From Takakia lepidozioides (taxonomy: Eukaryota > Plantae > Bryophyta): a stretch of 64,000 nucleotides of DNA. Made by a program: the position numbers and the translations under genes. The stretch lies in contig CM060733.1 in assembly GCA_030704615.1 (NCBI GenBank), positions 13,640,001-13,704,000 on the forward strand, given 5' to 3'. Within the stretch, counting starts at the first letter, position 1. The number at the start of each line of letters is the position of its first letter. Shown here piece by piece: positions 18,856-59,509 of the stretch. Below the pieces are notes generated by a model, which saw only the letters and a program-made list of their open reading frames with translations, had not been told where the DNA came from and did no database searches.

Positions 18856-19249
18856 CTTTCCCTGAAAACAAATCGGCCCTTGTGGGAAAGTTGGATTTCT
18901 TATACAGACGCTAGGGAAATCTCCATGATAGATCACCACTATAATCAGGGAATGTTGTAATTCTGTGGGGAAGTTTACAAGGAAATCGGTAGGTTGTGCA
19001 GGGAACCTTGGATTTTAGGGCAAAATCCATAATTCCTGCATCCGTCGACGCTTGAGTACAGTCTACGAATTCCGTTTGCTTGCTCTGGCTTCCGCTTTGG
19101 CCAACTGCTTCTTTCTTGTCCACAAATGCGGCGAACCTCACAGACAATTGACAATCCTGTAGGCCACCGTTCCTTAGAACGCTGTGTGGCGTTACAAACC
19201 GTTTCAATGGTTATCGAAAAACTTGGAGATTTTCTGAATTGAGAGTGTA

Positions 19250-24555: not shown

Positions 24556-25367
24556 GGTCTCAAGCACGGTTGAAGAGGAGGGCAAGGCCTCTAGGATCGC
24601 CACCATAATAAATTAGTTCGTTGACAATTCCATCACACCCACCGGCTTTGTAGCACTTTAGAAGTTCTAGTGCTTCAGGGATCTCAGAAGAACAAATGGT
24701 TGTATCTCTTTATAATATACTCCAGAACAATTGTACCTTGCATTCTTTATAAAACCCCTCACCATTAGAGTTAGATTCACGTCCAAGAAGGCTGTAGTAT
24801 CATTGATATTACGGCAGTCCTTGTAAAGCGGCCAGCTATCAATGTGAAAGAGATCTGAAATACTTTATAACGTCCGCAGAAAGCTCAAAGAGCTCATGGG
24901 AGAAGGTTAGACAGAGAAATGAAATGACATGGTAGAAAGTAAGCAGCTTCGTACTGACAGAAGAGATCTGTAAGCTCAATGAAAAGCCCAAAGAGCTTAT
25001 GTGATAGTAGCACATAACAACTGTATATAACATGAGAGGCAAATCATTCCATAAAGACTGAGAGACATAGGTAAGCTCAGAAGTACTACTAAGAAAGTGT
25101 GAGAGGGACTACATGAGGATTACTCAGCCACGCTGAGTTTGTCAGGGTTGTATATTCAGGTCTAAACTTTGTACAGGTTGCCCAGGGTTTCTACTTTTGC
25201 TTGCTAATTAAATAATTTTCTAACGACACAGAAAAATGCCCAGTGCTCATGCACGCGAATTGTGCACAAGGCCCAAGAATGCTAAAAGTTGAGGCAGCTT
25301 AGGGAATTCCAAAAAGGCCTTGATGTGAAATGCATCGCAATTCACTTGATCACCCCCCTAAAAGTGC

Positions 25368-25530
25368 GCAATTCAATTGAATTGCAAAAAGCAGCTTGAA
25401 AAGAACCCTAACTTGCAATTCAATTGAATTGTCGGTACACAATTCAATTGAACTGCGAATTCACAATTCAATTGAATTGTAGTCTACAATTCAAGTGAAT
25501 TGCGAAATGACAATTCAATTGAATTGCAAA
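25368..25530. repeat. Subterminal array of the 16-bp palindrome CAATTCAATTGAATTG
   Basis: About 6 copies here; further clusters at 37465-37577 and 38370-38556. Confidence 0.9.
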
Positions 25531-26377
25531 CTATAAATTTTTACGATATAACATATATCATGTATATGTATATGTATATGCATTGTATACACATATACAT
25601 ATGAGAGTATAAGCTGAATATACTGCCCGTCTATTCCTGCAGCCCATCCATCCTTTGCTTGTGGTAAGGCCTAAGTCACGAGATGAGTCGCGTAGCCTAA
25701 CGGAGAGAGATGAGAGAGAGAGAGCGAGAGCGAGGGAAAGGGAGAGAGAAATGAAGTGATGAAGGGTTTTTAGGGCAGAGGTGCCCTAAAAGTGAAAGGA
25801 TCAAATCAGTTGGAGGACGAGAAGTAGCGAGAGAAGAATGCAACAACAAAAGATTTGTGGAGCGGTGGTGGAGCGGTGGTGGCGCTATGTATTATGGAAG
25901 CCTTCTTGGATCACCAAATGACAAGATCTGCCCATGAGTAAGCACATTCCCATACTGGCATGAGTCCCCCCAATCATTGATAAAGATATCATTTTAGCTA
26001 AAGTTGTACTTCTTGTGTACGTGCAGGTGACTCATGAGCTTTGAGGAGAGAACTTTAGGGGTAGTAGAGTGGGTTACCAAACGCTCCTCAACACACACAC
26101 TGAAAGAAAGAGCTTGATCACATGGTTTGTCTTCAACCCGCCCACACTGTGTACTGTGGTTTGCTAATACATTTTAGGATAGAGTAGTTGTTGTTTCAAA
26201 GTACATTTGGTTCATCTACTTGATAGCCTATGTGAACTTTAGTGACGTAAGTCCTATGGGGAGTGTGTGAGTGGATGCAGTGACTACAGAATTAACAGCA
26301 AACAATTACAACAAGGGCAAGGTCGAAGGGCACTGGCATTGGGGCTATTAAGCAGAGATAAGACAGATCATGTGAGC

Positions 26378-28081
26378 ATGGAAAACAACCATTTGGATGG
26401 TGACAAAGTAGTGGATGATTTAATACTTTATGTGGAAGCAATGTTGAATGAGGGTGCCACAATGAAATCAATCGCCACTGCCCTTTCTTTTGATGATGTA
26501 CGACCATTGAGAAGATTGCTATCAGAAGTCCAAGGGTCTCCTTTCAAAGTTCATCATCAATTGAGTGTCCAACGCTTGTGTGAAAAGATTCAAGAGTTAC
26601 TTCCTATTGAAGAGAATGGGGAATGAGAACAGTGCAATCTGCCTTAAGGAGGTCAAATTTGCGGATTCCTCGAAGGAAGGTGGGGGAAGCTTTGAAAATC
26701 ATCTCACCCTACCATTATGAGCGTAGGAGTAGGGCACAGGCAATTCGGAGGACTCAGTATAATGTAACAATGCCTATGGCTCTATGGCACATTGACTGTA
26801 AGTATTTTATCTCATGCATCTTAATGTTCTTTGAAGATGCACATGCAAGACGTTTTCTTGCATTACATATCGCACAAAATTGTAGGCAAACTAAAACATG
26901 TATGCAATTCGTAGTGCAGCTTATGACAAATTGGTTATGTTTGGTCTTCGAGTACATGCTGGCATTGATGGGGCCTCTCATTTTGTTTTATGGGCGAACG
27001 TTGCAAGAAACAAGAAAGAAAAAACCATTTTCAAAGGATATCACGATGCAGTTTCCAAGTTTGGAGCACCTTTACGAATTCGATCTAATTTTGCAGTAGA
27101 GCACTCTCTTATAAAACAACACATTGAAGCCACACGTTCTGAAACACCCAATCCGTACTTGACTGGGTCTTCCACACACAATCAGGTTAGTGCTCTATAC
27201 AATTCTATCTTGCATATCAACTTTACGTTTCTGTCATATTTTTTGGTTCATCTTTATTAATCATTGAGTGTGTAATGTTGTGCATATCTCTAATATTTTG
27301 TGTGTTGTAATCACCACGTTAGAGGATTGAACACTTTTGGCGGCATCTATGGGAGAAGGTAATGTTCTACTACAAAAATTGCTTCCAAGCAATGGTCAAT
27401 GATAGATTATTGGATATGGACGATCCGTGGCAACGAGAATCTTTTATTGACGTATATATGCCCATAGTACAAGAAGCTGTTGATGAATACGTGAAGATTT
27501 GGAATGGACATCGAGTTCGCACGATTAATGAAAACGGTCGATATCGTCGATCGCATGTTCCTGCTCGTTTCTTTCGCGAGTATGAACGTTTGCATGGGTA
27601 AGCTCATGGCTTTCTCTTGTTTGTACTTTCATTGTTAAGCTACAATTTACATTGGAATGTTATTCTAATGTGGTGATGTGTTTGATCATGTAGATGGACC
27701 AGCCACCTTATTGATGACCCACGATTTAGGGAAGACCCCCAACACATTGGTAACCAAGACTTGGGGCCTCGTGGGAATTCAAGGTGGCGATGTGCAGGTG
27801 GTTTGCATGACCTTCCCACCAAAGGAGCTGAACTCATTCCTGACATGGTTCGTGTCCGTGCACAAGCTTATGAAATTGGAAAGGTTGGGAAGGATTCGAT
27901 CTCTTGTTTTCGTCTCCACTACTACATGTCTCGGTATTGTGGTTTGGCAACGCATGAACATAGATATTTTGATCAATTGGACCTCATTGGTAATACCGTG
28001 TTAAGTAGGGAAGCTCTCCAACTTTTAATTACACAAGCTCTTGAGGTAGTTTCCCTGTTTGGTATACCTACAGAGGTATAG
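26378..28081 (+). pseudogene. Integrase-core DDE transposase (IS3EU-like), 4 exons, one frameshift, second catalytic Asp changed to Asn
   Basis: HTH-like N-terminus; 1-nt shift ~26618; introns 26798-26919, 27186-27322, 27598-27693. The spliced product has ALWHID-SYDKL, HAGIDGASH, GAPLRIRSN (family consensus R.D), GSSTHNQ-RIEHFWR and WNGHRVR. Confidence 0.85.
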
Positions 28082-28605
28082 CGTTTGATTTACAAATAAA
28101 TTTGATGTCAAAAACAGTGTATATTTATGTAGAGATATTGTCATGAGGTAGTAGCCCTGATTAGTATACCGACAGAGGTATAACACTTGATTGACAAAGA
28201 AACTTAGTTATATATACTAGTAGAGGTATCGTCATTAGGTTGTAGCCCTGTCTACAGAGGTATAGTATTTCATTTTACAAGAAAAGTTGGCCAAATTAAT
28301 CTATATTTATGCGGAGGTATCGTCATGAGACAATAGCCCTGTTTAGTATATCACCAGAGGTATAGCGCCTGACTTACAAAGAAACTTGGTCAAATCAGCC
28401 TATATGCAGGTTGAGGTATCGTTATGAGGTAGTTGCCCTGTTTAGTATACCTACAGAGGTATAACGCATGATAGCCAAAGAAACTCAAGATAAATCAGGC
28501 TGTATTCATGTAGAGGTATCGTTAAGAGGTAATAGTCGTGTTTGGTTTACCTACAGAGATATAGTGTTTGGAAGACAAAGAAACCTAAGATAATTCAGTC
28601 TATAT
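28043..28605 (+). repeat. Tandem array of ~100-bp units (about 6 copies), each with several GAGGTA motifs
   Basis: Unit anchor GAGGTAGT(A/T)GCCCTG at ~28043, 28145, 28236, 28327, 28426, 28526. Confidence 0.9.
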
Positions 28606-30040
28606 GCCCCTGGTCGCAGCTGAAAAATGACTTCCCGCACAGCAAAAGCTCAGACATATTTGCATAAGACCATAGGAGTGCCCAAATTAGTGAACACATA
28701 TTACCTTACCCACTTTCTTATTGCCAATTGTGTGATGCTGTGGATGTTTCTAAACCTTAATATGGCATTGGATAAACCCTAAAACATGTGTGAGATTTCA
28801 CTAGCTTTCAAGGACAACAACAGGGCATGACCAATTGATCAAAGAAGACAATCTTGAACTGTGATACTTCTCATGTTTTGCTATTTACAATGTAATAATG
28901 TCTTGAAGCTTTACAGAAATCATACGGCAGGTGGGCCTCTCTCCCACCCTCTCCCCCAAGACTAAAACATATTAGAGCACTTCGTACAGCGCATAAGAAA
29001 GTAAAACTAGCTAGTAAACATTTTATAGTACTCTACTCCACTTACCATATTAAATATGCAGTATAGCAGCATTCCATTAATGGGTGCAAGAAGATAGGGG
29101 ACCGCCACTTAAGAGGCCATGGTGTTTTTCTGGTATCACATTATTCACACTAGGGTAGACTGCAGTTGGCCCAAGTGGAGTGTCACCTAAGTCCAAGTGC
29201 AATCCATTATGTATCCAAGTGCCTCACCTATGTCGAGGCCAATGTGTGAAGAATTGAACTCAATATACTAAAATGAAGTTGGATTTTTGGTGGAAAATTG
29301 TCAACCAGATCTTGTCAGTGTTTGATAACAAAGACATCCGAAACAAGGAGCCAACAGGAGCCTGACCTCTACTCCTGGCTAGGGAGCAATTCAAAATTCA
29401 GGTGCACTTTGATCTTGGTACTTCAATTCTTTCCATGACGTCAATTATCTGCCTTCAGAGAAGAGAGCCAGAGATTAGGTGTTCTGTTGACTGCGTTGCA
29501 GTTGTATGCTGTACAACTTGCATGGGCTCTGGGACAGGGATGTAGTGTTTTGGGTGAAAGGCCTCATCCAATTCATGCCATACCAATCAATACCCAAATA
29601 CCATTACAGTCACTTCGTGACCTTTCAAGTGGCCACCGTGGGATTAGGTCTTGTCGGTTAAGGCTAGCTTTCAACAGCATTCATGCGAGGTAGTCAAGGG
29701 CTCTATCTGAAGCAGCACCACAAGAAACATACAAACATGTCCAAGTTTAGGAACTTCGAGAAGCTCCACCATCCACACCAGAATTAGGCCAGCACACTCA
29801 TTTCCTTCCACTATCATCAGAGTCAGTAAAGCTCCCCCCTTCACTCATGACTTCACCTGCTCCAATCAATTGCAATTATGGGCTGACTTCCCACCTATGC
29901 TGGGTAGACCCCACTACCATTTCCTGTGGAAATGCCCTCAACAGTACATCATGGTCAATATGCTCAGGAAATGGGGATGATCTGAGTAGCTACACAGATC
30001 AACAAATGAAGAACTCAAACTTTTCCAAGAAAACATCGTT

Positions 30041-32359
30041 TCACCAGTAATCCCCACAAGAACAAACCCCATCTTCAAAGTGGTGAAAGCGGTTAGCATC
30101 CCGTACAACAATAGCTCGGCCAACAATCTTTGAGATGAACTTGGTGGAGCTGTGGCAGTCACCACAAACCCGAAGATTCTTGATGAGACGGAGAGGTGTC
30201 CTCGGGGCCGTGCTGATCAGCCCATAACCAATGGCCAGCTTCTCACTGTGGTGGCAAAGAGAATATTCCTTTTGCTCCTCCCCCACATCATGCAATGCGA
30301 AGCGTGTGTCAGGCACATACCCCGCTTTCTTCATCTGCCCAGACAATCTTCTCAGCTCAGCATGGATTTCCTCAATTTTTGGATGCAATTTCTCATCTAC
30401 CACAAAGCTGTGCACCCTGTTGCCGACCTCAATGCAGCAGCGACCTGGCTCCTTCCTAACGGCTCTCACCTCCATTATTTTTCTCACCTTTGCAGCATCA
30501 TCCCACCTGCCAGCTGCGGCATAGATGTTTGATAGCAACACATAAGTCGCGGCATCCTGTTCATCCCACTTGAGAATTGATGTTGCCGCACGTTCAGCCA
30601 TCTCCACATTGCAATGGATTCGGCAGGCACCAAGCAAGGCCCTCCAAACCACAACATTTGGTTTCATTGGCATTTTATTGATGCAGTCCTCTGCCTCATC
30701 CAATCGCCCTGCACGGCCAAGAAGGTCCACCATGGAGCCAAAGTGCTCCACTGCTGGAGTGATGGCATGATCTTGGCTCATGGAGTAAAAGTAGTATTTG
30801 CCTTCATCCACTAGGCCAGCATGGCTACATGCAGAGAGAACACTTAGAAAAGTGACACCATCCAGCTTGAGGCCTTTCAATTGCATTTCTTCCAATAGTT
30901 GCAGGGCCTCCATATCATAACCATGCTGGGCATATCCTGCAATCATCACGTTCCAGGACGCCACATCTCGTTCAGCCATATTGTTGAACACTCGCTTTGC
31001 ATCCACAATGCTGCCGCATTTGGCATACATGTCCACCAGGGTTTTGTTCAGAATGACATCTGGTACAATTCCTGCTTTGATGATGTCACCATGGACCTCT
31101 TTGCCCCTTTCCAGGGCTGCCAGGCTCGCGCACGCATTGCAAACACAATCGAACGTGACCCGGTTGGGCTTCACCCCGTCCCGCATCATTTGCTCATACA
31201 TCTCCAAAGCCTCCATCCCCCACCCATGCTGGGCATATCCTGCGATCATCGCGCTCCAGGACACCACATTTCGTTCAGTCATATTCTCGAACACTCCCTT
31301 TGCATCCTCAATGCTCCCGCATTTGGCATACATGTCCACAAGGGCGGTACTCAGAATGACATCTGGTACAATTCCTGCTTTGATGATGTCGCCATGGACC
31401 TCTTTGCCCCTTTCCAAGGCTGCCAGGCTGGCGCACGCATTGCAAACGCAAATGAATGTGACCCGGTTGGGCTTCACCCCTTCCCACATCATTTTCTCAT
31501 AGGTCTCCAAAGCCTCCATCCCACACCCATGCTGTGCATATCCTGCAATCATAGCACTCCAGGACACCACATCGTGTACGGCCATATGGTCAAATACTCC
31601 TTTTGCATCCTCAATCCTCCCACATTTGGCATACATGTTCATAAGGGCAGTGTTCAGAACGACATTTGGTACAATTCCAGCTTTGATGATGTCACCGTGG
31701 ACCTCTTTGCCCTTTTCCAGGGCTGCCAGGCTTGCACATGCATTGCAAATGCAAACGAACGTCACCCAGTCAGGCTTCACCCCTTCCCGCATCATTTGCT
31801 CATATGTCTCCAAAGCATTTCTACCACACCCATGCTTGGTAAATCCTGCCACCATTGTATTCCACGAGATCAATGATCGTTGAGGCATCCTATTGAACAC
31901 TTGGTGAGCATCCACAATGCTCCCACACTTCACGTACATGTTGACAAGGGTGTTGTGTAAGAAAATGTTTGGCTTGAATCCACTTTGGATAATGTGAGTG
32001 TGCACCTGCTTTCCAGCTTCCAGGCCTTTCATCTTGATGCACTTATGCAAGAGACAGATGTAAGTATCAGAATCTGCTGAAATGTTTCCATGATTTAAAG
32101 TTTGTAGAGCCTCTTTCAGTCGCCCTGCCTCACATAGCATCCTCACATGCCCAGAAGTGCCAGAAGAGGCATTGTGGACTCCCTCTCTTGGTCCTCTTTC
32201 GGAAGCCGTAGTCATGGTCGATGTGCCTGATTTTATCAGCCGCGCCGCCACCGCTGCTATCCATGGTGGTTTGTTGTAGCTATTGATCCACAGGGAATCA
32301 TTGGTGCTTGAAATATTGTGCTTGAAATCCGGCCCTCTTGAATGAATCTGGACCCACAC
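30041..32359 (-). CDS. PLS-class pentatricopeptide repeat protein with E/DYW deaminase domain (organellar C-to-U RNA editing factor)
   Basis: 772-aa open frame with P-L-S repeats (LVDMYAKCGSIEDA, VVSWSAMIAGYAQHG), PG box KEPGRCCIEV, HSEKLA, CGDCH and terminal CSCGDYW. The 5' start is uncertain. Confidence 0.95.
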   Translation of the reverse strand: MWVQIHSRGPDFKHNISSTNDSLWINSYNKPPWIAAVAARLIKSGTSTMTTASERGPREGVHNASSGTSGHVRMLCEAGRLKEALQTLNHGNISADSDTYICLLHKCIKMKGLEAGKQVHTHIIQSGFKPNIFLHNTLVNMYVKCGSIVDAHQVFNRMPQRSLISWNTMVAGFTKHGCGRNALETYEQMMREGVKPDWVTFVCICNACASLAALEKGKEVHGDIIKAGIVPNVVLNTALMNMYAKCGRIEDAKGVFDHMAVHDVVSWSAMIAGYAQHGCGMEALETYEKMMWEGVKPNRVTFICVCNACASLAALERGKEVHGDIIKAGIVPDVILSTALVDMYAKCGSIEDAKGVFENMTERNVVSWSAMIAGYAQHGWGMEALEMYEQMMRDGVKPNRVTFDCVCNACASLAALERGKEVHGDIIKAGIVPDVILNKTLVDMYAKCGSIVDAKRVFNNMAERDVASWNVMIAGYAQHGYDMEALQLLEEMQLKGLKLDGVTFLSVLSACSHAGLVDEGKYYFYSMSQDHAITPAVEHFGSMVDLLGRAGRLDEAEDCINKMPMKPNVVVWRALLGACRIHCNVEMAERAATSILKWDEQDAATYVLLSNIYAAAGRWDDAAKVRKIMEVRAVRKEPGRCCIEVGNRVHSFVVDEKLHPKIEEIHAELRRLSGQMKKAGYVPDTRFALHDVGEEQKEYSLCHHSEKLAIGYGLISTAPRTPLRLIKNLRVCGDCHSSTKFISKIVGRAIVVRDANRFHHFEDGVCSCGDYW

Positions 32360-33881: not shown

Positions 33882-34832
33882 TCCAGCCAGTCACTGAGAA
33901 GAGGCAGAAAGATATGTTTTAGTCCGTGTTTTCCATCCCAGATGCAAGAAACGATTGCAAAAGCAGGCTCCTCTACATGGAAACGACCATCCAGCTTCAA
34001 CGATCACGCATTTGCTGCCGCATTTTTTATTTGGACCCCTCATCTCTCTCCTCTCATCCCAAAAGTCACCAGAAGGAGAACCTCGTAGCCGTGCCCCTGT
34101 ACTTCCCAGCACGGGTCAAAATTCAGCTCTGACATCTCCTCTCCAAGTGATCTCCGCTTGCCTTCTCAGCTTTTATCATGACAGAGTCTCTAGGGTAAGC
34201 ATCGACCCTTGTGCATTCCGTGTAGGGGAACCGAGGCCGTTCCATGGCCTTTGGGAACGTGGCGCGGTTCAGTTTTACATGCAACATCCATAAGCTTAAG
34301 CGTATTTGAATCCTGGGACCCGCATGTCTGATTTCTCAGTTTCTTCCTGAACTGACGGATGTGAATCTGACATGGGGAGGGAGGTAGATCCAGTGGGGTG
34401 CGGAGTATTGCCTACATGGGGGTGGACGTACATTTTCCTTGAGAAGGCTTAGTGGGTATGGAGTATACCGACTGGGGAAAGGGAGGGGCTGCATCGATCG
34501 CAGCTCAATCTGTCACAGGAGAAAAGAGCTGACCTGATGTTGGAAGAAATCTTACGTACATCGTCGGTGGAACATTTTGTGCACCGTATGTGTTCTTTCC
34601 CCTTGTACCTTGTTATTTTCTAGCTTTGTGTACTGGTTGCATAGACATTGAACTTCAGAGGGCCGCAGCTGTTGGGTTTGCTATGAAATGCCTTGGAGTG
34701 GCAAGCACGAACAATGAGGAGGCATGTTTCATGGGATTCGGTCTTGTGCATTTCGCTGTGTCTCAGATTCTTGGAGGCAAGCACAAACTCACATAGAGCG
34801 AGACGGACAGAGGGGGACATTAAGGAGGAAAG

Positions 34833-36712: not shown

Positions 36713-37440
36713 AGTCTTCTTCTCGCTGCAACTTCAGAAAGTCTTGTTGGTCATGTAGTCGAGCATCAATTGGCTGTTTCTGAGCAAGCCCCTGCAATCA
36801 GCAGGAGCAGGAGCCTTAAACTTATCCCTCTAGATTTCCAAATGACTTAGAGCTGCCTGGCATTCAGTTGCCATTGAGGAGAATGCCATCAAAGCTATTT
36901 CTGGAAGGAGAAAATGCCAGGTTTACTGATACTAGTTCTACGAAATTTTGTTTTGGTATAGGATTTTCCTCTTTTGCTCCTGTTCCTGGCTGGATGGTAA
37001 ACAATCTTATGGCTTCCAAGTGCACTGTAGCATACTTATTTAGGTTGTCTCATATGTCGACAGCATACTTCATGAATCAGTGCATTGCATGCTAAACCTG
37101 AGAAAGTGCACACTTCACCTGAGCATGGAGACACTGACAGAAAACATGTTTGGGCACTATTTTGGGTTATTATCACCACTTTGTATGGAACCCTAGAGTC
37201 ATAAATTATGAACTGGTTGAATGTTCTGAACCCCGTTGCAGATCTTCTCTTCCCTCTATGGAGACTACACACATAACTGGCCTTTCTGCACAGTTTTCAG
37301 CTCTGGCAGTGAAACTTCTCCCTCTCTTATTAATCTAGGTCAATGGGGTGATATCATCCGATGACCTTTTATGTCATCCGTTCCTCTATTCAGCCATTGT
37401 CTATAGGGCAGCCACCACCGTGACCTTGAACTGCTAAAAC

Positions 37441-38617
37441 TAGCTTGAAAACAACCCTAATTTGCAATTCAATTGAATTGTCGGCACACGATTCAATTGA
37501 ATAGTTGACTGCAATTCAATTGAATTGTGAATTTGCAAATCAATTGAATTGCGAATTGGCAATTCAATTGAATTGTAATCTATAATTTTTAACTTCATTT
37601 CTGTATATATTATATATATATGTACATATTTAAATTATACATATATGCATACAAAAGTATAAGCTAAAAATACATGTTGCCCGTCTATTCTTGCTGTCCG
37701 TCTGTCAATCCTTTGCCCGTGGTAAGGCTTGAGCTCGAGATAAGCCTAAGGGAGAGCGAGAGAGGGAGAGAGAGAGAGGAAGTCACAAAAGCGCTTGTAA
37801 AAGCGGGATTGTCTCTCTTTGTGGATGTTGGTGCCAATATATGGCTATGTACATATACCAAACATGATACAAATGTAAGAGTATCAACGTGTAAGAGTTT
37901 GATATATTAAACTTATATGGAACACACATCCCAACTTCAACATGATACCTTTGTAAGGGTATGGAAACAAAATCATTTTTGATAATTCTCAAGATGAACA
38001 TATTTTTTGTTTTCTTTGCCCTGGGCTAGATACTAGTGTTAGGGGACTACATGATGATGTAGGGGAAGCCTTTTCATCAATTGTCAGGTTTGATTTTGTC
38101 TGTTTCTTTCGGAGCCAGCCATGTTTCTTTTGCCAGTGAATCACAGGAAGCTGCTGATCTCTCTCTGTCTCTGGCTCTCCCTTTCTCGCTGAGGGTGAGG
38201 GTGGCTTCACAACTCCACAATTTCCTCAAGGGCACAAGAAAGAGGGCCAGCAAGAATAGACGGGCAACATGTATTTTTAGCTTATACTCTTATATGTGTA
38301 TAAGTATAATTTGAATGTATACATATACATATATATTATATACATAAATAAGTTAAAAATGATATATTACAATTCAATTGAATTGCAAATTAGGGTTGTT
38401 TAGGGAATTTCAAATAGGCCTTGATGTGAAATGCATCGCAATTCACTTGATCACCCCCCTAAAAGTGCGCAATTCAATTGAATCGCCCTTGCAATTCAAT
38501 TGAATTGCAAAAACCAGCTTGAAAAGAACCCTAATTTGCAATTCAATTGAATTGCAAACTATAAATTTTTACGGATTTTTGTATATAACGTATATAATAT
38601 ATGTATATATGTATATT
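37441..38617. mobile_element. Foldback cluster of three left-end fragments of the IS3EU-like element
   Basis: 37441-37780 matches 25390-25750 (direct); 38160-38400 is an inverted copy (ACAACCCTAATTTGCAATTCAATTGAATTG vs its reverse complement at 38370-38399); 38401-38617 matches the terminus from 25300 onward. Confidence 0.85.
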
Positions 38618-38619
38618 CA

Positions 38620-39445
38620 TGGTTGTGGGATGAAGGCTTGGAGACCTATGAGCAAATGGTGCTGAAAGGGGCAAAGAAGTCTATGTGTTGACATCAGGAA
38701 AGGTAGGATTGTACCAAATAGTATTCTGGAAAATGCCCGAGTGGACATATATGCCAGATGTGGGAGTATCCAGGATGCAAAGGGAGTCTTTGACAATATG
38801 GCTAAACAAGATGTGGTGTCGTGGAGTGCACTGATTGCAGGATATGCCAAACATGGTTGTGGGAAGGTAAGTTGTGGTTTACAACTCATATTGTGATAGT
38901 GTAAGACATAAGAATATACGCTGTTGGAGGCACTATTGTTTTCTGTTGCTTGCCTTGTACTTGCTTATGGCCCCTCAGCTGAAGGTGTTAATACAAAGCT
39001 GATTCAGGCTACCAATGTCCCAAGTGTAGTCTTCATTAACAGAGCTAAGAGCTAAGATTGTGTCTCTGAGATGTGCAGGTGAGAGTACAAGAAGCCAGCA
39101 AAGACACTCGGATTCTTGAGCTTTGCTTGGACCATCTATGGGAGGCCGATGCCCTCCCTCTTGTTGAAACGCTGACTATGGTGGAAACCTCAAAGATTGA
39201 GGCAACGGATGTGGTCTTTGGAGACCTACGAGCAAATGATGCTGAAAGGGATAAAGCCCAACTAGGTAACATTTGTTTGCCTTCGCAATGCATAGCAGCC
39301 GTAGAAAGGGACAAAGAGGTCTATGCTAACATCTGGAAAGTTGGGATTGTACCAAGTATCATTCTTGAAAATGCCCTTGTGGACACGTATGCCAAATGTG
39401 GGGGTATCCAGGATGCAAAATGGAGTGTTTGACAATATGGCTTGA
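38620..39445 (+). pseudogene. Two decayed PLS-PPR fragments
   Basis: VDIYARCGSIQDAKGVFDNMAKQDVVSWSALIAGYAKHG (~38740-38860) and ILENALVDTYAKCGGIQDAK (~39360-39420), with frameshifts and stops. Confidence 0.8.
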
Positions 39446-40549
39446 ATCCATTGATTTCTAACTTTCAGGTCCCCCTTGCCGGTTGTGTGGTAAGGCCCTA
39501 GCAATTATACTGCCCTACTCAAACACCTTTGGCCATGAACTGTTGCATATTGAAGGCTGAGCATAGGGCAGCTAGTGGGAGCTTTGCCAATGTGCAAGGA
39601 CTCGAGTGGGAAACTTCGATAGGAAATATGACCCTGTCCACTGTGACTTAAACTGTTATGGATTGTGCTCCTGGGACTTCCATTGGGACCTGTGAGCCAA
39701 GCCTACAGGGCATGTGTACCTCAAGGATTTCATATTCTGACACTTGTAGAGACTGTGGCCTGCATCACTTCCTGGTAAGGCAAACACACTATAAATGTTA
39801 AATACTTTTGTAATCTGAGAAGTAGCTCTGTTGCTTTAGGACGAAGGGAACCGTTCCCGTTCTAGTGAAAAAAGACTTGCATGGGTAAGAGTAGGTGTGA
39901 AAGTTACTTGACGAGCTTTTGTGCAAATTGTAACAATAGTCGGGGTTTACTATGGGTACAGGGAAGCTACATGCACCACTCGTGACAAGGTACATATCTA
40001 AATCAATCTGAGACATGCTTATTTCAGATGTGGTGCTCAGCATGGTTAACAATGTTAGGAAATGAGTTTAGGGAGTTGGTTGGCTTCATTTTGTTTCTGG
40101 TGTCATTTCCATTGGAAGGGTGTGACTTGAACCTTGATAGCCAGCAACATGTTTTGCAGTGCTTGTATTCTTTGAAGATGTGAGCAAGAAGGCCCTAACT
40201 GGTAAACTAGTCTGTGAGCAAAACACATGAAGAACAATTGGAGGGAAGGGGTTAGTGTTTGTGTCATGGCTGGTCTGTAATGCTTGGAATTAAGTTTAGG
40301 TTGATGGTCAGTGTGAGTGTTGAGTGTTTATTGTCTCTGCAAGCGTAGGTTGCTGGCCAATCTGCTAAAAAAAGAGCCACATCTCAAGAGCTTGCAGGCA
40401 GCAGTAGACAACTTCAGGGTGTGTTCTCTGCCCTATAACAACATTGTCTTTTTGTGAAGATAGGAATAGGGGTCCAGTGCTACGAGCTCGGAGCATCGAG
40501 CTTTTCAAACAACATTGTTTTTTTTCAGGAGACAGGAAAGTATCTAAAC

Positions 40550-42205: not shown

Positions 42206-44929
42206 AACAAATCGAATCAGGGCCTCTTTTTTGGCTACCTTCACCTTGTAAGTATGGAGAAAATTCTGAGACTTGTTTGTATGTTTCTTCTTACTCTCTT
42301 TTTGACATTCTAGTTGCCTAAGAAAAGTGCCCAAATAATGGTACAAAGATACGGACGACACTACTCCATTGTAGGGAGGCTACGTCGCTATTGTCCTACC
42401 TAGAGGAATGTGGTTTGCAGGCTGTGTAGGCGCCGGGTGGTTTTCCTAGCCTCAAGTATAGCTCCCAAGAACCTTTGCTAAATGGGTGCATACAACATAA
42501 AAGTTGTAGGCCGAGGCTATGTACATATATTGAGGCTGTGGATACAGTGACTGCTTTAGGATTAAGCATGTAAATGGGTACATTGGGAGTCCAATTCACT
42601 TACTCTTTGGCCATGTTGCTGATCTGGTGCTTGTGCATTTGCAGGATTGTAAGCAGAAGTATCCAGACGTGATTGTGCCAAACCCACTAGAAGCCATTCA
42701 ACAGCTGCGAAACAGGCAGTTGATGCTTCAGGATGTGGCCGATCTAGACCTTTGTGACTATGTGGTTGGTTTTTCTCCAGTACACAGTGCCTTAAACTAG
42801 CTCTTATATCTATTTGACTTGGAGTTTCGGTTTAGGGGCATCAATTTAATCAATTTTACTCACACTGAGAACCAAATTTTGAGTAACCAGTCATATTGCA
42901 GACTTAAGTTAATTTAAATCTCAATGATTGAGTGAGTGAGTCCACGGCAATGCCTGGATACATGAGAAGTTGACCTGCATTTTGTTGTTTTCCATTTCTT
43001 GCAGCTTTTGGAATTTGAATATGGTCCTGGACGACCATCCGATCTGCTTACTTCTTTTCATAGCCCCGTGTTTTCATTTTGCTCGTGTTGTTTGCAATCT
43101 GAGTATCCCGCAACAAAGAGGAAGATTTAAAAAACTTAGTTGATGAATTATGTTCTGCATGATTCCCACATCTGAGGAACAAGGGAATCACCAGTCATGA
43201 AGCAGGTTAGAGGTGTGACTTGGGTATGGGCTAATATGGACTTGGTAGTGATCTTCCTGTGCAGACCTCTGTCCATGTGCTTTTCAATCAATCTTTGGTT
43301 CCAGTACAAAAGAATGTAGAGGTATTGAGCACAAGGGGAAGCAATATAACTTGGCATAGGGGCTGATATGGACTTGACATTGATCTTCCATGTGCAGACC
43401 TCTCTCCATGTGCTGCTCATCCACCACTCTACCCACTGCCTGCAAGTCCAAAATACCCACAACTGTGAGTTAAAAATGACCATCTCAAAATCTACAATGC
43501 TTCCCAACCATCCCCTTAGTAAATAACAATGGAACACTTCACCTAAATGCAATAAAGGCATATTGTTAGCATCCATTCTTCAAGCAGATGTGGCTTAACT
43601 CTGCACTCACCATCTCTCTCCCCTCACTCTATTGGACGTTATCAAATCTTAATCCAGGAAAAATTCATACCTGCTGAATATTGGTTCCTGCGGTGTACTG
43701 AGCACCACCTGAAGAGCGTAGTTGCTTTAGCTTGGCATTTCAGACTGCCTGTGTTGGATCAGTACCACTCTCCTCATGTGTGGAGCACGTGATGTGCTTT
43801 GACCAAAATCACTTGGTGCATCCACAACCAACGCTACCTCATATGTCATTTACCATAGAAGAAAGTTGACGGCACTCCATGTACTTACAATAGTGTCGGA
43901 TGAATCTACACACCTTTTTGCTGCTCCTGGCAGGAAATTTGGCATGCAGATCATCGGACATCGTACTATGGTTTAAACGTCTCATTGGGAATTCCTGACT
44001 GGGTGGTACTTAGGACCTAGTTCTGAAGTCAAGTATGTATAGCTAGAGAGATCTGTGGTCCGAGGAGTTATTGAGGTGGGATTGAGGTATAACCAGAAAC
44101 TTGCAGATCATGTTTGATAATCCCCTCGAGCATGTACTTCGAACATTCTTTAGTTCTCAAGGCCCGTGCGAGGACGCAAGGAATGTGAGTTACTCTGCTG
44201 TTGGAGGGCTAAGTGAACAAATTATGGAGCCTCGAGAGTCCATCGAACTACCTATTATGAACCATGCTCACTCGTCCTTCGTGTTGGCATCAACTGACCC
44301 ACTTGAGGTAATTGATGATCCTCTCACAAATGTTATGTTTCGCAAACTACTGGAACTTTCTAGCAGAGTAGGGGATATCTTCTTGACATTGGTTGATGTC
44401 AGTGTTGGCAACGTTAGGTAAGCCTGACAGTGGATCAGTTTATATGCCTTCATGTGATTTGTTATCTACTGGACATGGTGTATTGCTCTATGGGATCCCC
44501 AGGAACAGGAACTTAGACACTACTAGTAGCTAGCAACAAATTATGTTGATGCCGAACTTCTCAAGGTATGATTATGACAGACAAGGGGTTCTTGTTAGAG
44601 ACACAAAAACTCCTAAATGATGTGAATATGCACCAACAAATTAATGGCTTTGGTGGTTGCTGCTTGGCTGTATAGCTCCAAGGATCTCTTGACGTCTACA
44701 TGGAATTTTGCCTCGAGCGGTGCTTGCAGAAGGAGTGGGGCTTCAATAATCAATTGATTGTCGTCCAAAAAACTTATGACCTGAAGGCAAACTGCTGGAA
44801 AGTGTCTCTACATCTGCGAAGTCCAACTAATGCAAATAATTCCATCAATAAGTGCCAACGAGCTTTGTCCACAACTATTGGTTCGCAACCCACTAGTATC
44901 ATGCCAATACACCCACTCCCCTCTTGCTA

Positions 44930-45560
44930 CACATGAGTCATAGATGGCAACCACCATCTCCAAGACATCAGGCCTGTCTCGTGCCAAAACCTGAGAGTTG
45001 TTGTACCCCACAACAATGATGGTGTACCCTTTGTCGCATGAGCGGTTCAAATCCATGCGAGCCACCTGCAAAAACTGATCATGTATGGAGTTGCAAATTT
45101 ACATTGCAAGATGCATAGCAATGAAACCAAAGAGGAAAGAAGAGGGAAAGAATTGAAATGTCCACTATCCCGAAAATAAATATGTCTGAAGACAATCACA
45201 TATCAACCCAAGATCTGAAAGATGAAGAGGTTGTCCGAGACAAATAAGTGAACGGATGTAGCTAGTGTACCTTGCTTTCCAAATGCTTTCATAAAGGCGG
45301 GAGGAATGTATAGTCCTCTGTTACAGGGTTGCAAACAACCATGATAGATTGTGGAGGAAAACAAAAATCCCAATCACACATATAGGGTGGATCATTCTCA
45401 TCTGCATGTGACCTTGGCTGTCGGCCCCCTTCCACGCACAAAAGCCCTCCCGCACCTGCGATTACGTTGTGCACATCCCTTGCCAGGAATGCCAAGGCTG
45501 GCATGTCGGATCCCTATATTGTCATCACAATCCATTATTGCTGGTTTGACTAAGTGACTG
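44930..45560 (-). pseudogene. F-box-associated (kelch-like) gene fragment
   Basis: IAGAGGLLCV...MVVCNPVTEDYTFLPPL and GYTIIVVG...VAIYDS are typical of plant F-box C-terminal regions; truncated. Confidence 0.55.
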
Positions 45561-46403
45561 GTCACTAGATCACCAGTCACACCTTCATAGGAGTGGGCAT
45601 GTGGCTTACAAGTGTTGGGCTGCCAATAACAAACCCACTACAACGTTGCACTACAATCATAATCTCATCACTATTGCAGAACTCAGCATTCATGCTCTCG
45701 ATTCCCACTCCAGCCTTTGAAATTCCTCAACTTCCATTCAGCATCCCATGAACCCCACATGCAGCCCAAGTGTTATTACAAGCACGTTATGTGCTTTGGT
45801 AAATACTGTTGGTGGAATGAGCCAAAGCCCTCAAACCTTGGCCAAATGTTTATGCAAACTTCCTTAAACTGCTTGTGAGCTAAATGGGTTTGATGTGCAT
45901 GCCAGGGCTAGCTCCATCTCATTTTTTTGGGGACCCTTTGGGAGACAGATGGCTTACTCAGAAGTGCTTCAGCTTCATGTGATTCACTAGCAAAAGAAAT
46001 ATGGCTAGCTCTGAAAGAAACAGACAATTTCAAACCTGACAATTGATGAATGGCTTCCCCTGCATCATCATATAGTCCCCTGGCACTAGTATCTGGCCCC
46101 CATGACACAACCCCAGAGAAAACAAATGACATGTTCATTTCGAGAATTATCAATAATAATCTTGTTTCGATACCCTTACAAAGGTATCATGTTGCAATTG
46201 GGTTGTGTGTTCGATAGAGAGTTTAATATATCAACTCTTAGACGTTGATACTCTTACAATGGTATCATGTTTGGTATATGTACATAGCCATATATTGGCA
46301 CTATAAGGGCTTGGCAGTATGAAATTGGTTAGTGTCTCAAGGTGCAGATGAAACATGCAAACAGATTGAGATTGTAAGCAACACCCACCAGTCAAACTCA
46401 TCC

Positions 46404-46897
46404 TCAGAAGAGATTGATACACAAAAATTTCTTAGGGTCGTTGGTGCGCAGGCTTTTGTCAAGGGCTTGATATCATCATCGGTCAACTCAAAGTCAAAGA
46501 CATCAAGGTTCTACTTCAATCTCTCCATCTTGTCTGACTTAGGAATGACAATTGTCTTGTGCTCAATGCCCCAGTGCATCGCAATTTGTGTCGGTGTCTT
46601 GTTGTACTTTCTTGGCAATCCATGTAGTGTGTTTATAGTGTGTGTGAGAGAGAGAGGGAAGCAAGAGATCACGCCTTACATAGAGTAGTGAATCACAACT
46701 GAAGTTAATAATTCATAAGGGAGCACTTAGGGAAGATGCAAACCTGAAGAACAGCGTCATCAAGACACGAAACGGTGCCCAATAAATTCCGTGTTGTCAA
46801 CCCCACCACCCAATGGCGTGTGGGCAGTGACAACTATCCCATGCTTCTGGTAGAAATTCACCAATGATTCACGCTGGAAGTAAGGATAGGTTTCGAT
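46404..46897 (-). pseudogene. 3' exons of an aldo-keto reductase (AKR2, M6PR/S6PDH-like), decayed
   Basis: IETYPYFQRESLVNFYQKHGIVVTAHTPLGG...TVSCLDDAVLQ|gt and KYNKTPTQIAMHWGIEHKTIVIPKSDKMERLK*NLDVFDFELT...LRTNDPKKF.CINLF*; contains a stop and frameshifts; not in the ORF track. Confidence 0.85.
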
Positions 46898-48524
46898 GCT
46901 AGCTTAATCTTTGAATATGCAAGGCAGTCCCGGGTCAAAAAGATGTCGTAATTTCTGCCAAACACATGCTGATTAGAAAGGAGAGAGCCCATCCTTGCTC
47001 TCCTGGCTTGCTGGTCTACAATTTCAATCAAATGTCAATACATAGAAGATAAAGGTATAGAAAACTGCAGAGATGAGGATAAAATAGTACAAGAAGGAAA
47101 CCAGACCGGGAGAAAAGAGAGGAAGTGCAAGGATTCCCCGAAGCTCAGTCCCAAACATTACATCCAAAACATAATCAAAACAAGACCTTGTCAATTCCTG
47201 AAGTTCGCATAACAATGGACTTACAATTGCATCTGTCTCGCCAACAATATGCCGCTCCGTCATATCTCCTCGATGCAAGACCAACAAGCACAAATCTGCA
47301 TTGTGGGTTGAAATCTCACCTAAGGTTAAGTTGGCAAAATAAAAAGGGTGGAAATAGATGGAAATACATAACATAATTTTGGATGGGTGTTAGGGACAAC
47401 TTAACACACCAAATTACCGTTATTATGGTTATTTTGAAGATGTTAGAAGGGGAATGGAGCCCATTATTGAAAGCCCATTAATATGCTAATAAGCCTGTTA
47501 AGAACCTAAAAAGATAACCACCATGAAGCCCATTATTGAAAGTGAACAAACGGAACACGCGCTAGAAGTTTAGGAGATCGCGTCATAATGACAGCAGCCA
47601 AAATTGAATCGAAATCACTTCATCGATGATACCATTGTTTCTCAATAACTCCAAGGAAGTCAGCAACTCACTCCTGGTGATGGAAGCATAAGGAAGGAGA
47701 CTTCTTTCGTGTTTTTCAGCGAGTGAAGCCAAGTGATAATTCTTGGTCCATATCTGTTAAATTACAAAGACAACGCACACACACCAACAAAGGCATTTCA
47801 GGGAAGGTGTCTCACTAGCATAACTCGCCCTGAACTCATCGATAGCCATACTACCCACCCTGGCTTTCACTTCACGCTGCAACTACAAAAGTAAGTCTCC
47901 CGGGGACCTCTGTGCTTCTCTGTGAATTTACCACTTCCCTCTGTTCCCCCCTTCAACTCATCATGATGTCAATTGCATCCCCTCTCTCTTCTCCCATACC
48001 ATAACCTCTCTCAATTTTCTATGTCAACGAGAGGGGAAAGAAGGAAAGAGAAAGCAGAAGTTTGTTGCGACCACAGGAGTGCGTCACAATGTAACCCCCA
48101 GTCTAAGAAACCCAAACATTGCTTGGCGATGGAGTGCCTCATGCAGGTAGAACGCTAGTCAATTTATTCCTTGTAACTGAAGTCCACTGCCAGGGAATTT
48201 CTCTACACTATCGTTTCTTATATATCATAGTTACAGTATCTTCATTTAGACTGCCGGCGCTCTCTGAAAAATGACAAGCATTTATGCTCACATGTATAGC
48301 GTATCTCTAAAGTGGCCATATTGTATACCTCAAATAAGCCAATCCGGGTGTTTTTTTCAGAAGTTTAGAGCTCAAGTAGGTTACTGAAGAATGAAGCCAA
48401 CACACAATGGAAGACTGCTAACCGTGTGACACTTGAGCATTGGTGACAAAACCCTGCCAATTCCTCACAACGTGTAGGGAATTCCAAAAATTCCCATTGT
48501 TTAATGGATCTCAACTCACAAATG

Positions 48525-48805
48525 CACCAACCTCTATAGGTATACCAAAGAGGATCACTACTACATAATGACGATACCTCTACTAGCATATATAGCTAAG
48601 TTTCTTTGTAAATCAAGCGTTATACCTCTATTGGTATACTAATCAGGGCTACTACCTCATGACAATACCTCCACATAAATATACACTGATTTAGCAAAAT
48701 TTATTTGTAAATCAAACGCTATACCTCTATAGGTATACCAAACAGGGAAACTACCTCATGACGATACCTCTACCTACATATAGACTAATTTTGACTTAGT
48801 TTCTT
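48525..48805 (-). repeat. About 3 units of the ~100-bp GAGGTA array, inverted relative to 28043-28605
   Basis: The reverse complement of 48565-48758 aligns collinearly with 28043-28240. Confidence 0.9.
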
Positions 48806-48809
48806 TGGA

Positions 48810-51800
48810 ATGCAACAGATCTCAATGGATCTCAATTCTTACTTTTTTGGCAGGTTCACAAATGCGTGCACAGATATAGAAATGTCCAAACAAGATGAAG
48901 ACTGGACGCACCACTTGCAGGATATTGACCCTGGTTGTGCATCACAAAACAATGAGGATTCTTTAGTACAAAACTTGCCACAAATCCCACGTCGAGTAAG
49001 TGCATTTGTAGGGCATATTCGACAGCAAGGTGAGCATTTTGCATATCCACCCAATGTACCAGCACCACCCCAAGGCCAAGGTCACAACGTCCAAGGTATG
49101 GCAAATGTACCAAGTCTTTGTGGACCTACTCAAATTGGCACTGTCAATGACTTGAATGTTTCTGTTCCTCGAAACATTTGCGAGTCGAGAACACAACGAA
49201 GAAGACAGCCTCAAGCATCTTCTAATGTGCCTCCCAAAGATATTCAACGGCGCATCCATATGCTTCCAAGGTCAACAGAGTGGTCAACCTATCGTGAGGC
49301 TTTAACGCCATTGATTTCCAACTGGGTTCCAGACAACCCAGTTGTTTTGGTCTCTCTCAAAGCAAACCTTCAGTGGGGTGGGCAAATCTATCCCGAGCCA
49401 TTCTGTCTTGGAACATTGGAGTTTCAGATTGCTGCCCACTTTGCACAACTTGAGCCTCATCGTCAAACACCTACACCACGTGTGACAGGGTGTTTTTTTC
49501 AAACGGACCAGGAGAGCAACAGGCAAATATTTTCTCGAGCCATTGATCCGAAAACGTGGGGCTCTATGGGGCCGATTGCCAGCAACAACATTTGTTGTTT
49601 ACATCTCTGATAGCAGCGAGGTTTCATATGTTCCTGATGTAAGCACAGTCCCAAGTGATGGAATTGTTGCTTATCAACAATTCCTAAGAAATCCACCTAA
49701 GAAGAGGGATAGAAGGTGTAGGGAGGTTGACAATGAAAGAAGGTCCAATGCCCATGGATGGCGATGTGGTAGTGCACAGATCAGACCTATGGAGATTGAA
49801 GATTCCCAATCTCTGTCCTCATCAAACGATGGTAAACCTTTTCATATGGCCCCATCACAAGTTCAAGATGTTCATGTCACCCAAGTGCCCCAAGATGTTC
49901 AAAGGGTCCAAAGGCCTTATGGTATGACAACATCTCACATTGAAGCTGATAGTACGTCACAAGTACCAAAGCGTGTCAGAGGTTCAAATGGGGTAAGGCC
50001 TTCTACGACCCTGCACACCACGGGATTAAACAGTGATGTGTCTTCGTTTGGATTGATGGAACAATCAAGTGGCAATATTCCGACTAGCAGCATTGGAGAT
50101 TCTGATTCAGATTTTATGAGTGAGCCGCCTCGAGGTGGATGTAGGAACGTGCAACGGGGGAATGTCCAAGGTCACTACAATCTGGCATTACCTGCACCGC
50201 CAATCACAACAACGCATGTTGGTATGTCATCCTCATCTAGTATGATTGTTAATGAGATGGACATAATTTCCTCAACACCCACTCATTGTACATGGGCAAC
50301 TGAAGATGAAGTTCTCAACAAGATGGCAGAGACATGGATCAAACATCAAGAGGCATACTTCAAGGCATTGGGGGAACGTGATGTTAAATCTGCATATGAA
50401 GCACTCGATGTCCACAAGGATGAACAGGGATCCCAAGCTTTTTGGTCAGCTTTTGACATGTTTAAAGTTGAGCTCCATACAGATTCTTTCAATGATGAAG
50501 TGTTGAGACGTATTGGTAACGAGCTCTTTAAAAGAAAAGAGCTTCGTAGGGGTTCCACTACATCTGAGGCTAATCTCAGTAGGGTTACTATGCACCCTTC
50601 CATGAGCATGTATAATCTTGGCGATATTTGAATTCAGTTTGAGCTCATGGCGCGACCTTTTTGGAAAGATTGGGATGCATGGGATCTAGCTATCTCTAAG
50701 TCCTCGAATGTTGGTCTATGTATCCCAACAGCAGAAGAGATTCTACAACACTACAACATCAATGGAGGTTCTCTAGGTGATGAAGATCACACCTTCAGTC
50801 AAAGAATCCATGAGACATTGAAGTTATGTGCTTTTACCAAATTTTCAAGGGCCCACCTTGAGCTTATGTGTTGCTCAGACAAAATTGAGACTCACCAAGA
50901 TGAGGCGACACTTTTGCAATCAAGAGAGAAGGTTGATGAAGCCATATTGAAATACCAACGGTATTATATGAGTCAAATTGTTTTCAAGCCGGACAAAAGA
51001 TGGTTGGGCTTTTCCAACATCACTATTACTAAGATTCCGGTGAGTTCATGCACTGTCATGATCGTATTTAATTTTGTAAGCTTGCTTTCACTTAGAATTA
51101 GACATTTCGAAGTTGTTGAAATTTCCGTGTTGTTTTTCAAGGTGACCCAAACGAAGGAGCTTCAAGCTTTCAACCTTCAATGGAATGAGATCAAATATGA
51201 AAGAGCTTGCTATAGACCAAAGGTTGAATTTATTCATTCCAGCGGCATTGCTGAAAGATTGACTATCGATGAAGATGGTTTGCGTGATGCATGGCTTACA
51301 AATACTTGGAAGCAATTTTGGTCTACCTCTTTCGTAAGCAGTAAATACAAACTTTTTTCATGTCTTAAGATTATTTGTAATCTTTTGCTTTGATGCACAT
51401 TTTGCATACTTAGGAATGTTTTTTGTGCTTTTTGTATTTTATGACAAACTTGAATTGTACTAGCAAAGACTGATGATTTTGTTGTTGGTTTTCAGAGCTA
51501 CAATACAATATTTGAATATCCTGATAATCTTCAAGGAAAGTTGTTGCATCCAAAATTGGATTCTGAGGTCATACGCACAGACATTCAATTGGATGCGGTG
51601 AGATTTGGATTGCAAAGTCATTTGTTTTATATTGACATGCATGAATTATTTTTGAAGATACTCCCAGGACAGTCATTTCTTGTGTTTGAATGTTAGGTAT
51701 CATTGTTGATTCTTACTATTTGTTTGTGTATATTGCAGGCCAAAATGCTAGGGCATTTGATCTTCATGCTCGCATCGAACAAATTGGAAGTCTCAAGACC

Positions 51801-52578
51801 TTTTTCATTCGCAACTTTGGTCATGTTTTGTGACCAAGTCCCCGAGTCCAAAAACATGTCCGTTGGTGTGGAGTCCAAAATGAAAAAGGATTTAGAACGT
51901 GATTTTCGATTGGGCTGGGCTGCAAAATGGTCAATCTTAAATTGCCTTAGAAAATCAAGAGATGAGGCAATGAAATTGATTCGAAGACTCCAAGAGGATG
52001 AAACACATGAAGACTTGGCTTGGACATTCTCGGATTTCAATCTGACAGAAGAAAATTGGGAATCTGAAGTTGAGCACAAGATTGGAGCCATTGTTTGGAG
52101 TCATCTTTTCAATGGACGCAATTTGATTGTGAAGGCAATGCAAGAGGGGTTTTACATGGCTGTGGAACAAGCACCATGTGCACCCACCATAAAGGATCGA
52201 ATGAAAGACAGTTTGAAAGGCATATCTCCTAATACAATGTGTGTTGTATTCAATGGTGCCTGTGCAATTGAAGCAAGTGATTTCTTGAGGAAGTGCATAT
52301 TTGATGTATCTATATTGCCCCTCCAACAAAAATGGTTTCGAGATTGTGTGGATCAAATGACCTATACTGAGAGGTCTCGATTGGCTATTTTTATCACTGG
52401 ATTGGAGTACTTTGGTGGCAAAGACATCAATATACAACTTCTCAATCGACACGACTATCCATGCATTCAAGCAAGCACTTGCTTTCAAGTTCTATATCTT
52501 CCCCCATACAAAGATGCCTCAATGATGATGACGAAGATTAACTATTCTACCATGGATAGTAGTTATGGTCGTGCATGA
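48810..52578 (+). pseudogene. Divergent HECT-domain E3 ubiquitin ligase; one frameshift and one nonsense codon
   Basis: C-lobe WFRDCVDQMTYTERSRLAIFITG...IQASTCFQVLYLPPY...KINYSTMDSSYGRA* (catalytic Cys 52480-52482); N-lobe KVEF...IDEDGLRDAW...IFEY. Introns 51040-51141, 51334-51495, 51568-51738; shift ~49495-49540; in-frame TGA 50629-50631. Confidence 0.8.
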
Positions 52579-59430: not shown

Positions 59431-59509
59431 ACGACAGCTCTAAGCATCCTACACACCGTTGGGGGAAACCGAAGAGGCGGCGATCTGCACATTTTGAACC
59501 AAAGAGATA

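Follow-up and report, generated by a model that had tools for sequence, protein, structure and literature searches.

The window analysed here comprises 64,000 nucleotides of the moss Takakia lepidozioides (GenBank assembly GCA_030704615.1, contig CM060733.1, positions 13,640,001 to 13,704,000 of the forward strand) and harbors two gene-bearing fragments, or arms, of a type found in GingerRoot/IS3EU transposons. In arm 1 (25300 to ~28607) the left end of such an element is followed by a dead transposase (integrase) gene and a tandem array. Arm 2, which runs from 48475 to at least 52578, comprises a 16-nt terminal remnant, the array in inverted orientation and a broken gene for a HECT-type ubiquitin ligase. 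Two further left-end fragments are located at 37.4-38.6 kb. All of these pieces are one-ended, the arms are separated by host genes, and none of the material is capable of moving. We interpret the window, with a probability of about 0.8, as the debris of GingerRoot/IS3EU cut-and-paste transposons, belonging to a clade whose members carry two genes on the same strand, one for an rve-type DDE transposase and one for a divergent HECT ligase.

The integrase pseudogene of arm 1 (26267-28081, + strand) was delimited by Pfam matches and by comparison of its exon junctions with the related locus L002 (ENA assembly ERZ25073694). It consists of an N-terminal open reading frame (ORF; 26267-26623), a frameshift near 26610, and exons at ~26623-26797, 26920-27185, 27323-27597 and 27694-28081, separated by GT-AG introns. 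The Pfam family rva_4 (PF24764) matches two of these exons, at 26922-27185 (E 2e-13) and 27323-27598 (E 4e-13), which bears out the assignment to the IS3EU type made in an earlier, sequence-only reading of the window. The exon borders are supported by L002, an intronless homologue in which the corresponding pieces are contiguous (4104-4367, 4368-4643 and 4644-4976). Homologues with 52-65% identity sit in elements bounded by terminal inverted repeats (TIRs), and the gene is a predicted rve-type DDE transposase of the IS3EU/GingerRoot lineage. The first Asp (in WHID) and the Glu (in HNQRIE) of the catalytic triad are present. The residue 35 positions before this Glu is Asn (RSNFAVE) in the window as well as in L002 and L008; L005, L013 and the Selaginella locus L001 have Asp there. 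The motif R.D.G.E that had been reported for this position is therefore not what the window encodes, and the window integrase has no intact D, D(35)E triad. Judged by the frameshift together with the Asn at the second catalytic position, the gene is dead.

Upstream of the integrase lies a type-A left terminal region of the GingerRoot/IS3EU kind (25300-25790, + strand), consisting of the terminal 20-mer TAGGGAATTCCAAAAAGGCC, subterminal repeats, an AT-rich microsatellite and a GA-rich stretch. The subterminal repeats are 24 bp long, share a CAATTCAATTGAATTG core and occupy 25369-25539. The 20-mer agrees at 17 of 20 positions with the TATGGAATGCCAAAAGGGCC termini of L005, L013 and L004, and the TIRs of the relatives likewise continue into comparable 21-bp subterminal repeats; these agreements identify 25300 as a genuine terminus of the predicted element. 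The terminal 16-mer TAGGGAATTCCAAAAA occurs exactly at 25300 and 48475 on the + strand, so that the identical start described previously for both arms stands, and a copy with two mismatches is found at 38401 (three matches in the window versus 0.05 expected from shuffles). All three left ends begin with TAGGG. The copy at 38401 opens a second type-A left terminus (38401-38610, + strand), which is 97.6% identical to 25299-25382 and stops after ~210 bp; the exact copy at 48475-48490 (+ strand) departs from type A from nucleotide 17 onwards and has host-like DNA on its left.

A small remnant at 37418-38398 is made up of an inverted pair of type-A subterminal fragments (direct at 37418-37790 and inverted at 38160-38398) that enclose a core of 320 bp (37831-38153), with both fragments lacking the outermost ~80-100 bp. 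The two fragments are 87.7% identical between 37554-37706 and 38391-38238, and 37426-37778 is 77% identical to 25377-25730. Because of this inverted pair, and in line with the symmetric TIRs of the relatives, the CAATTC-repeat region (the type-A subterminal sequence on the integrase side) probably belongs to both element ends, whereas the sequence-only reading had postulated two unlike ends. The segment 37831-38153 recurs, as a segment of 330 bp, in inverted orientation at 45970-46301 (86.5% identity), 2.2 kb upstream of the HECT arm, with no terminal sequences adjoining that copy.

The internal pair at 37554-37706 and 38391-38238, with its outer ends missing, is the only evidence for TIRs within the window. 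A right terminus was found in the window for none of the copies, and Smith-Waterman scores for a reverse-complement terminus downstream of either arm are no better than those of shuffles. A target duplication flanking an element is not readable in the window, where every copy is one-ended. The hexamer GCAGCT, located directly left of the 25300 terminus (25294-25299) and again 8 bp past the array of arm 1 (28616-28621), was considered as such a duplication; its right copy has no TA terminus or TIR, and the match is probably due to chance. The 12-mer CTGAAAAATGAC shared by 28620 and 48264 was likewise taken as chance, as the similarity does not extend. A possible duplication around the array of arm 2, the similarity of 15 nt between 48503-48517 and 48824-48838, was set aside, with 2 of 500 shuffles reaching an equal score and the surroundings locally repetitive. 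A metagenome scan with TAGGGAATTCCAAAAAKKCC returned 17 loci, all of them chance matches of 20-29 nt with no wider similarity.

The tandem array of arm 1 (28039-28607, + strand; roughly six units of ~100 bp) starts at the natural end of the integrase ORF and is followed by no terminus. Its counterpart in arm 2 (48530-48805, - strand; about 2.8 units) is inverted and matches it unit by unit over the first two units. The best block (28042-28245 versus 48758-48558) shows 92% identity over 204 bp, and a 65-nt stretch (28039-28103 versus 48697-48761) 97%, whereas units inside one array are only ~77-83% alike. No further occurrence exists within the window, which confirms the description of a private array that follows the integrase and, inverted, precedes the HECT gene. 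The array of arm 2 extends 47 bp past the point at which the array of arm 1 meets the integrase. The last integrase exon enters the array at 28039-28043 and, as had been stated, takes its stop codon from it (TAG, 28079-28081). The interpretation of 28043 as a deletion junction is not supported, however: the integrase reaches its natural C-terminus and no coding sequence is missing, because the L002 homologue stops within ~3 residues of the end that the window integrase reaches before the array. The start of the array in the middle of a unit is uninformative, since the phase of the unit is arbitrary and a tandem array may begin at any phase.

The HECT pseudogene of arm 2 (48810-52578, + strand) was identified by Pfam, profile, predicted fold and homologues. 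It comprises an N-terminal region of ~740 residues (48810-51039) and HECT domain exons at 51142-51333, 51496-51597 and 51739-52578. The exon borders are GT-AG, and in L003 the corresponding pieces abut at 10099/10100 or are separated by a gap of one codon (10198/10202). Two lesions interrupt the gene, a change of frame within 49543-49610 and a TGA stop in frame at 50629-50631; in L003 the stretch that matches this region lies inside one called gene of 631 residues. The last exon is intact and retains the catalytic Cys motif ASTCFQVLYLPPY. The HECT family (PF00632) matches 51739-52575 with E 1.1e-10 and 42 bits (cut-off 23.9); the match spans positions 143-297 of the 306 in the profile. When built from 19 homologues of this exon, a profile matched 71 solved HECT sequences (best E 2e-12); among single-sequence comparisons with solved structures, the HERC5 C-lobe scores best (E 0.007), and its catalytic Cys is aligned with the Cys of ASTCFQ, a residue conserved in eight of eight aligned copies. 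The last exon gave an AlphaFold2 model with a pLDDT of 82.2, for which each of the 50 best Foldseek matches in the PDB is a HECT domain (probability 1.00, TM-score up to 0.55); the model covers the last exon, with the early N-lobe exons 51142-51333 and 51496-51597 outside it. The exons of both genes were searched, aligned and folded singly rather than as joined proteins. At E<=1e-3 the HECT exon finds 51 matches among 1.84 billion representative proteins, all short fragments or small models, and no long canonical HECT ligase is among them. A homologous-protein search with the same exon yielded only three short relatives, none of them from the Takakia lepidozioides genome. The N-terminal region has no Pfam match and is conserved in every relative, with 23-36% identity. 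By prediction from sequence and fold, the window gene is a very divergent HECT ligase, dead through its frame break and in-frame stop.

The association of both genes becomes apparent in related loci. Integrase and HECT genes are found together between inverted TA..TA termini in Selaginella moellendorffii and in plant-like contigs, drawn from two assembly collections, and four loci (L001, L002, L005 and L013) thereby uphold the pairing that the sequence-only reading had proposed. Among these, L002 is complete, with TIRs of 1866 nt (859-2724 and 11723-13588) that share 99% identity. TACAGTG.. and TACGGTG.. form its termini, and a perfect 6-bp target duplication, TACCAT, lies on both sides; the integrase (3232-4976) and the HECT gene (7889-10432) both lie on the + strand. 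L001, from Selaginella moellendorffii (GCA_000143415.2), has TIRs of 54 nt (TATGGCG..CGCCATA) that enclose rva_4 and HECT-like genes, the latter with a Pfam score of 21.4 bits, just below the cut-off of 23.9; its flanks carry GCTCA on both sides, five matching bases. L005 and L013 (both ERZ25073694) hold the two genes between TATGGAATGCCAAAAGGGCC-type termini, with TIRs of ~450 nt and ~125 nt, respectively; L013 shows no target duplication. L008 and one 54.9-kb JGI metagenome contig show the integrase followed by HECT, as in L005 and L013, without terminal sequence. A TIR-LRR gene in one of the related loci indicates a plant origin.

The two genes lie on the same strand in ten of the ten related loci that hold both. 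The integrase precedes HECT in L001, L002, L005, L008, L013, L031 and one JGI contig, the last counted from called genes only. The reverse order, HECT followed by the integrase, is found in L032-L034, JGI metagenome contigs of a more distant lineage (for example L032:2865-8010, and likewise in the other two), in which the HECT exon is 24% identical to that of the window. Downstream of the HECT stop codon, at a distance of 2-3.8 kb, L003, L004, L006 and L007 retain a GingerRoot right terminus. The comparison of L008 (or L006, which has an identical HECT copy) with L013 gives a dN/dS of 0.12 for HECT and of 0.08 for the integrase; most other pairs combine a saturated dS with dN of 0.3-0.6. Both genes are thus, by this sequence estimate, under purifying selection between lineages (dN/dS ~0.1). 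The identity matrices of integrase and HECT correlate with r = 0.70, a value reached by 3 of 120 Mantel permutations; because only five loci enter this comparison, it hints at co-inheritance of HECT with the transposase. Overall, the sequence comparison identifies the predicted HECT ligase as a conserved companion gene of this transposon clade and the pairing as real and old.

The relatives also show further features of the termini and of gene structure. An intron of the HECT gene in L013 (9552-9666) contains a 36-bp unit in which the terminal 16 nt occur twice, facing each other, as TATGGAATGG..CTTTTGGCATTCCATA; this unit could be a minimal derivative or an excision footprint. Because exactly the terminal 16 nt recur alone at this site, as at 48475 in the window, the unit suggests that ~16 nt form a functional terminal module. 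In L005 (2631-2676 and 13078-13103) two elements abut tail to head, with 6 bp (GGTATG) between ..CCATA (2650) and TATGG.. (2657); the arrangement resembles the end junctions of the IS3 family, and the upstream element has an integrase and no HECT gene. L002 (4104-4976) and L003 (9908-11029) do not have the introns that are present at matching positions of both the integrase and the HECT gene in the window, L005, L008 and L013, and this difference between relatives indicates that introns were gained or lost inside transposon genes.

How the two arms came to lie as they do allows for several readings. The sequence-only reading had reconstructed an ancestor with convergent genes and unlike ends (TIR, integrase on the forward strand, HECT on the reverse strand, array, TIR), of which the copy at 25300 lost HECT by internal deletion while 48475 represents the other arm. 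Taken within the window alone, this is the most economical account of the array orientations: arm 2, when reversed, reads as HECT on the reverse strand, the array in + orientation, 55 bp and a terminus, arm 1 reads as integrase followed by the array in + orientation, and the extra 47 bp of array in arm 2 fit the same layout. The convergent order nevertheless finds no support in the ten related loci with both genes, all of which have them on one strand, and the completeness of the integrase ORF at the array argues against the internal deletion. The inverted fragments at 37554-37706 and 38391-38238 suggest type-A subterminal sequence at both ends, and the TIRs of the relatives are long and symmetric. 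No reverse-complement terminus follows the array of arm 1, neither arm has a right terminus, and the host ORFs between the arms likewise speak against a common ancestor of this layout. We consider it unlikely. The related claim that an element can be reconstructed from the window is not supported either, as each arm supplies one end only.

Alternatively, the arms might derive from a single same-strand copy, running from the terminus at 25300 through the integrase and a spacer to HECT, whose spacer of 1.5-3 kb was expanded to 20.7 kb by later insertions and rearrangements and which has lost its right end. Both genes occupy the + strand of the window and follow each other as in most relatives, L008 has tandem arrays in its spacer, and the region is full of further GingerRoot end fragments. 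Yet the arms overlap in content rather than continue each other, because they share the first two array units at 92% identity in opposite orientation; arm 2 has an exact terminal 16-mer on its left border, and the 20.7 kb between the integrase and HECT arms holds two host ORFs, an intact DYW-type PPR ORF of 771 residues and a nucleotide-sugar transferase ORF. We therefore regard a single copy as rather unlikely. That HECT is a host or domesticated gene next to transposon debris, with the 16-mer and the array as unrelated local repeats, appears very unlikely. Such a gene would agree with the lack of a terminus after the HECT gene of the window and with L003, L004 and L007, where no integrase is found upstream of HECT in the 8.2, 7.8 and 1.5 kb available. 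Against it stand the broken state of the window gene (frame change and in-frame stop), its homologues inside TIR-bounded elements with target duplications, the GingerRoot right terminus kept downstream of HECT in L003, L004, L006 and L007, and the rarity of this HECT family, which lies far from canonical HECT ligases.

The preferred interpretation, that of debris from several copies of a two-gene transposon clade, also has evidence weighing against it, to which the three loci just named with HECT and no upstream integrase belong. Within the window no facing pair of termini encloses the two genes, and the pairing rests on relatives with 24-62% protein identity. A simple same-strand parent leaves the opposite directions of the two arrays unaccounted for; either an additional inversion or a duplication that placed the array in the spacer in inverted form would be required. 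The Asn in place of the second catalytic Asp, common to the window, L002 and L008, could reflect independent decay or a non-catalytic lineage. A tblastx comparison of the flanks and of the interval (24.0-26.3, 28.1-30.05, 36.7-48.8 and 52.6-56.4 kb) with L001-L013 detected no further conserved coding sequence.

By analogy with known systems, the transposase of an intact element would bind the terminal ~16-20 nt (TAYGG-type) together with the subterminal repeats, and its cutting and integration would leave a 6-bp target duplication. Ubiquitin from a host E2 enzyme would be loaded onto the conserved Cys of the HECT protein and then passed to a substrate, which would be chosen by the N-terminal region of ~740 residues. 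Both this substrate and the benefit to the element we infer: a host factor acting to restrain the element is the guess that we favor, and the alternative is the transposase of the element itself. We tentatively propose, at somewhat less than even odds, that the HECT ligase is an ancient core gene under selection in a plant GingerRoot/IS3EU clade that extends from clubmosses to moss-like genomes, and that it ubiquitinates either a host restraint factor or the element's own transposase.

Among the remaining features of the window, the intact DYW-type PPR ORF between the arms (30041-32359, - strand) contains 303-bp tandem repeats (30906-31849, 86% matches), a period that fits three PPR motifs, and its residues 93-130 match Transpos_assoc (PF13963; E 2e-11). 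A fragment with 75-80% similarity to this ORF, PPR-like and in inverted orientation, occurs at 38664-39446. The whole region is flanked by a large direct duplication (13517-19044 and 56376-62412, 83-92% identity) with an inverted sub-block (16058-16792 versus 60478-59709); its ORFs have no Pfam match, and it may represent two copies of another large element. Outside the integrase and HECT finding, tandem arrays at 7480-7730 and 12393-12696 (75 bp and 52/105 bp) are organized around the palindrome-like motif AATTCGGCGCCGAATTT.

The description of GingerRoot in Selaginella lepidophylla reports its presence in 18 mosses and three lycophytes as well, together with TA..TA termini, 6-bp target duplications and TIRs of 100-150 bp (Cerbin et al. 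2019, PMC6839031); GingerRoot and IS3EU of Repbase form one lineage (PMC10045372). The superfamily, which the sequence-only reading had taken to be known mainly from animals and fungi, is accordingly already published for mosses and clubmosses (PMC6839031, PMC10045372). The loci considered here resemble GingerRoot in several respects: an rve-type DDE transposase without an HHCC zinc finger (the window integrase matches rva_4), in the relatives, TA..TA termini with a 6-bp target duplication that is perfect in L002 and TIRs of tens to more than 100 bp with subterminal repeats, occurrence in bryophytes and lycophytes, and many truncated or one-ended copies. They differ in the conserved HECT gene carried by the window and its relatives, in the 1.87-kb TIR of L002 as compared to the published 100-150 bp, and in that the window copies are one-ended and their genes dead. 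The GingerRoot paper (PMC6839031) contains neither the word ubiquitin nor the word HECT, and a second gene or a ligase is mentioned neither there nor in PMC10045372. Our literature search found no paper that links IS3EU with HECT, and broader searches gave nothing relevant; the HECT partner of GingerRoot is apparently undescribed, while the superfamily itself is already known.

The nearest precedent is provided by fungal IS3EU elements, which carry genes for a TET/JBP dioxygenase and an alpha-kinase and have termini of the form TAYGG..CCRTA with 6-bp target duplications; their authors propose that the accessory enzyme helps in escaping host silencing (PMC12730594). The start TATGG is shared by L005, L013, L004 and L001, with TAGGG in the window, and in both cases a gene for an accessory enzyme adjoins the transposase. 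The fungal enzyme, in contrast, acts on DNA methylation and is passed among many transposon superfamilies, whereas the accessory enzyme here is a putative ubiquitin ligase that tracks the transposase (in the five-locus comparison given above). Compared with canonical HECT ligases (NEDD4/WWP/ITCH, HUWE1, HERC and the plant UPLs), the last exon of the window gene corresponds to part of the N-lobe and the whole C-lobe, with a matching predicted fold, and its catalytic Cys stands in a T-C-F context followed by L-P-x-Y. The window gene differs from them in its distance (besides the E of 0.007 for the best solved structure, structural alignments show 13-19% identity), in having no detected WW, C2, RLD or other known substrate-binding domain, and in being transposon-borne.

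We note that the window itself adds little to the case for a transposon with a HECT ligase, as it holds the two genes only as dead, separated fragments, and a layout inferred from these fragments would mislead annotation. Proteases, demethylases and kinases are known as cargo of DNA transposons. A description of a DNA transposon with its own HECT ligase was not found in our literature search. If it is true that the ligase serves the element, it would constitute a new route by which a transposon manipulates the protein turnover of its host, with a transposon-encoded E3 ligase acting much like the E3 ligases of viruses.

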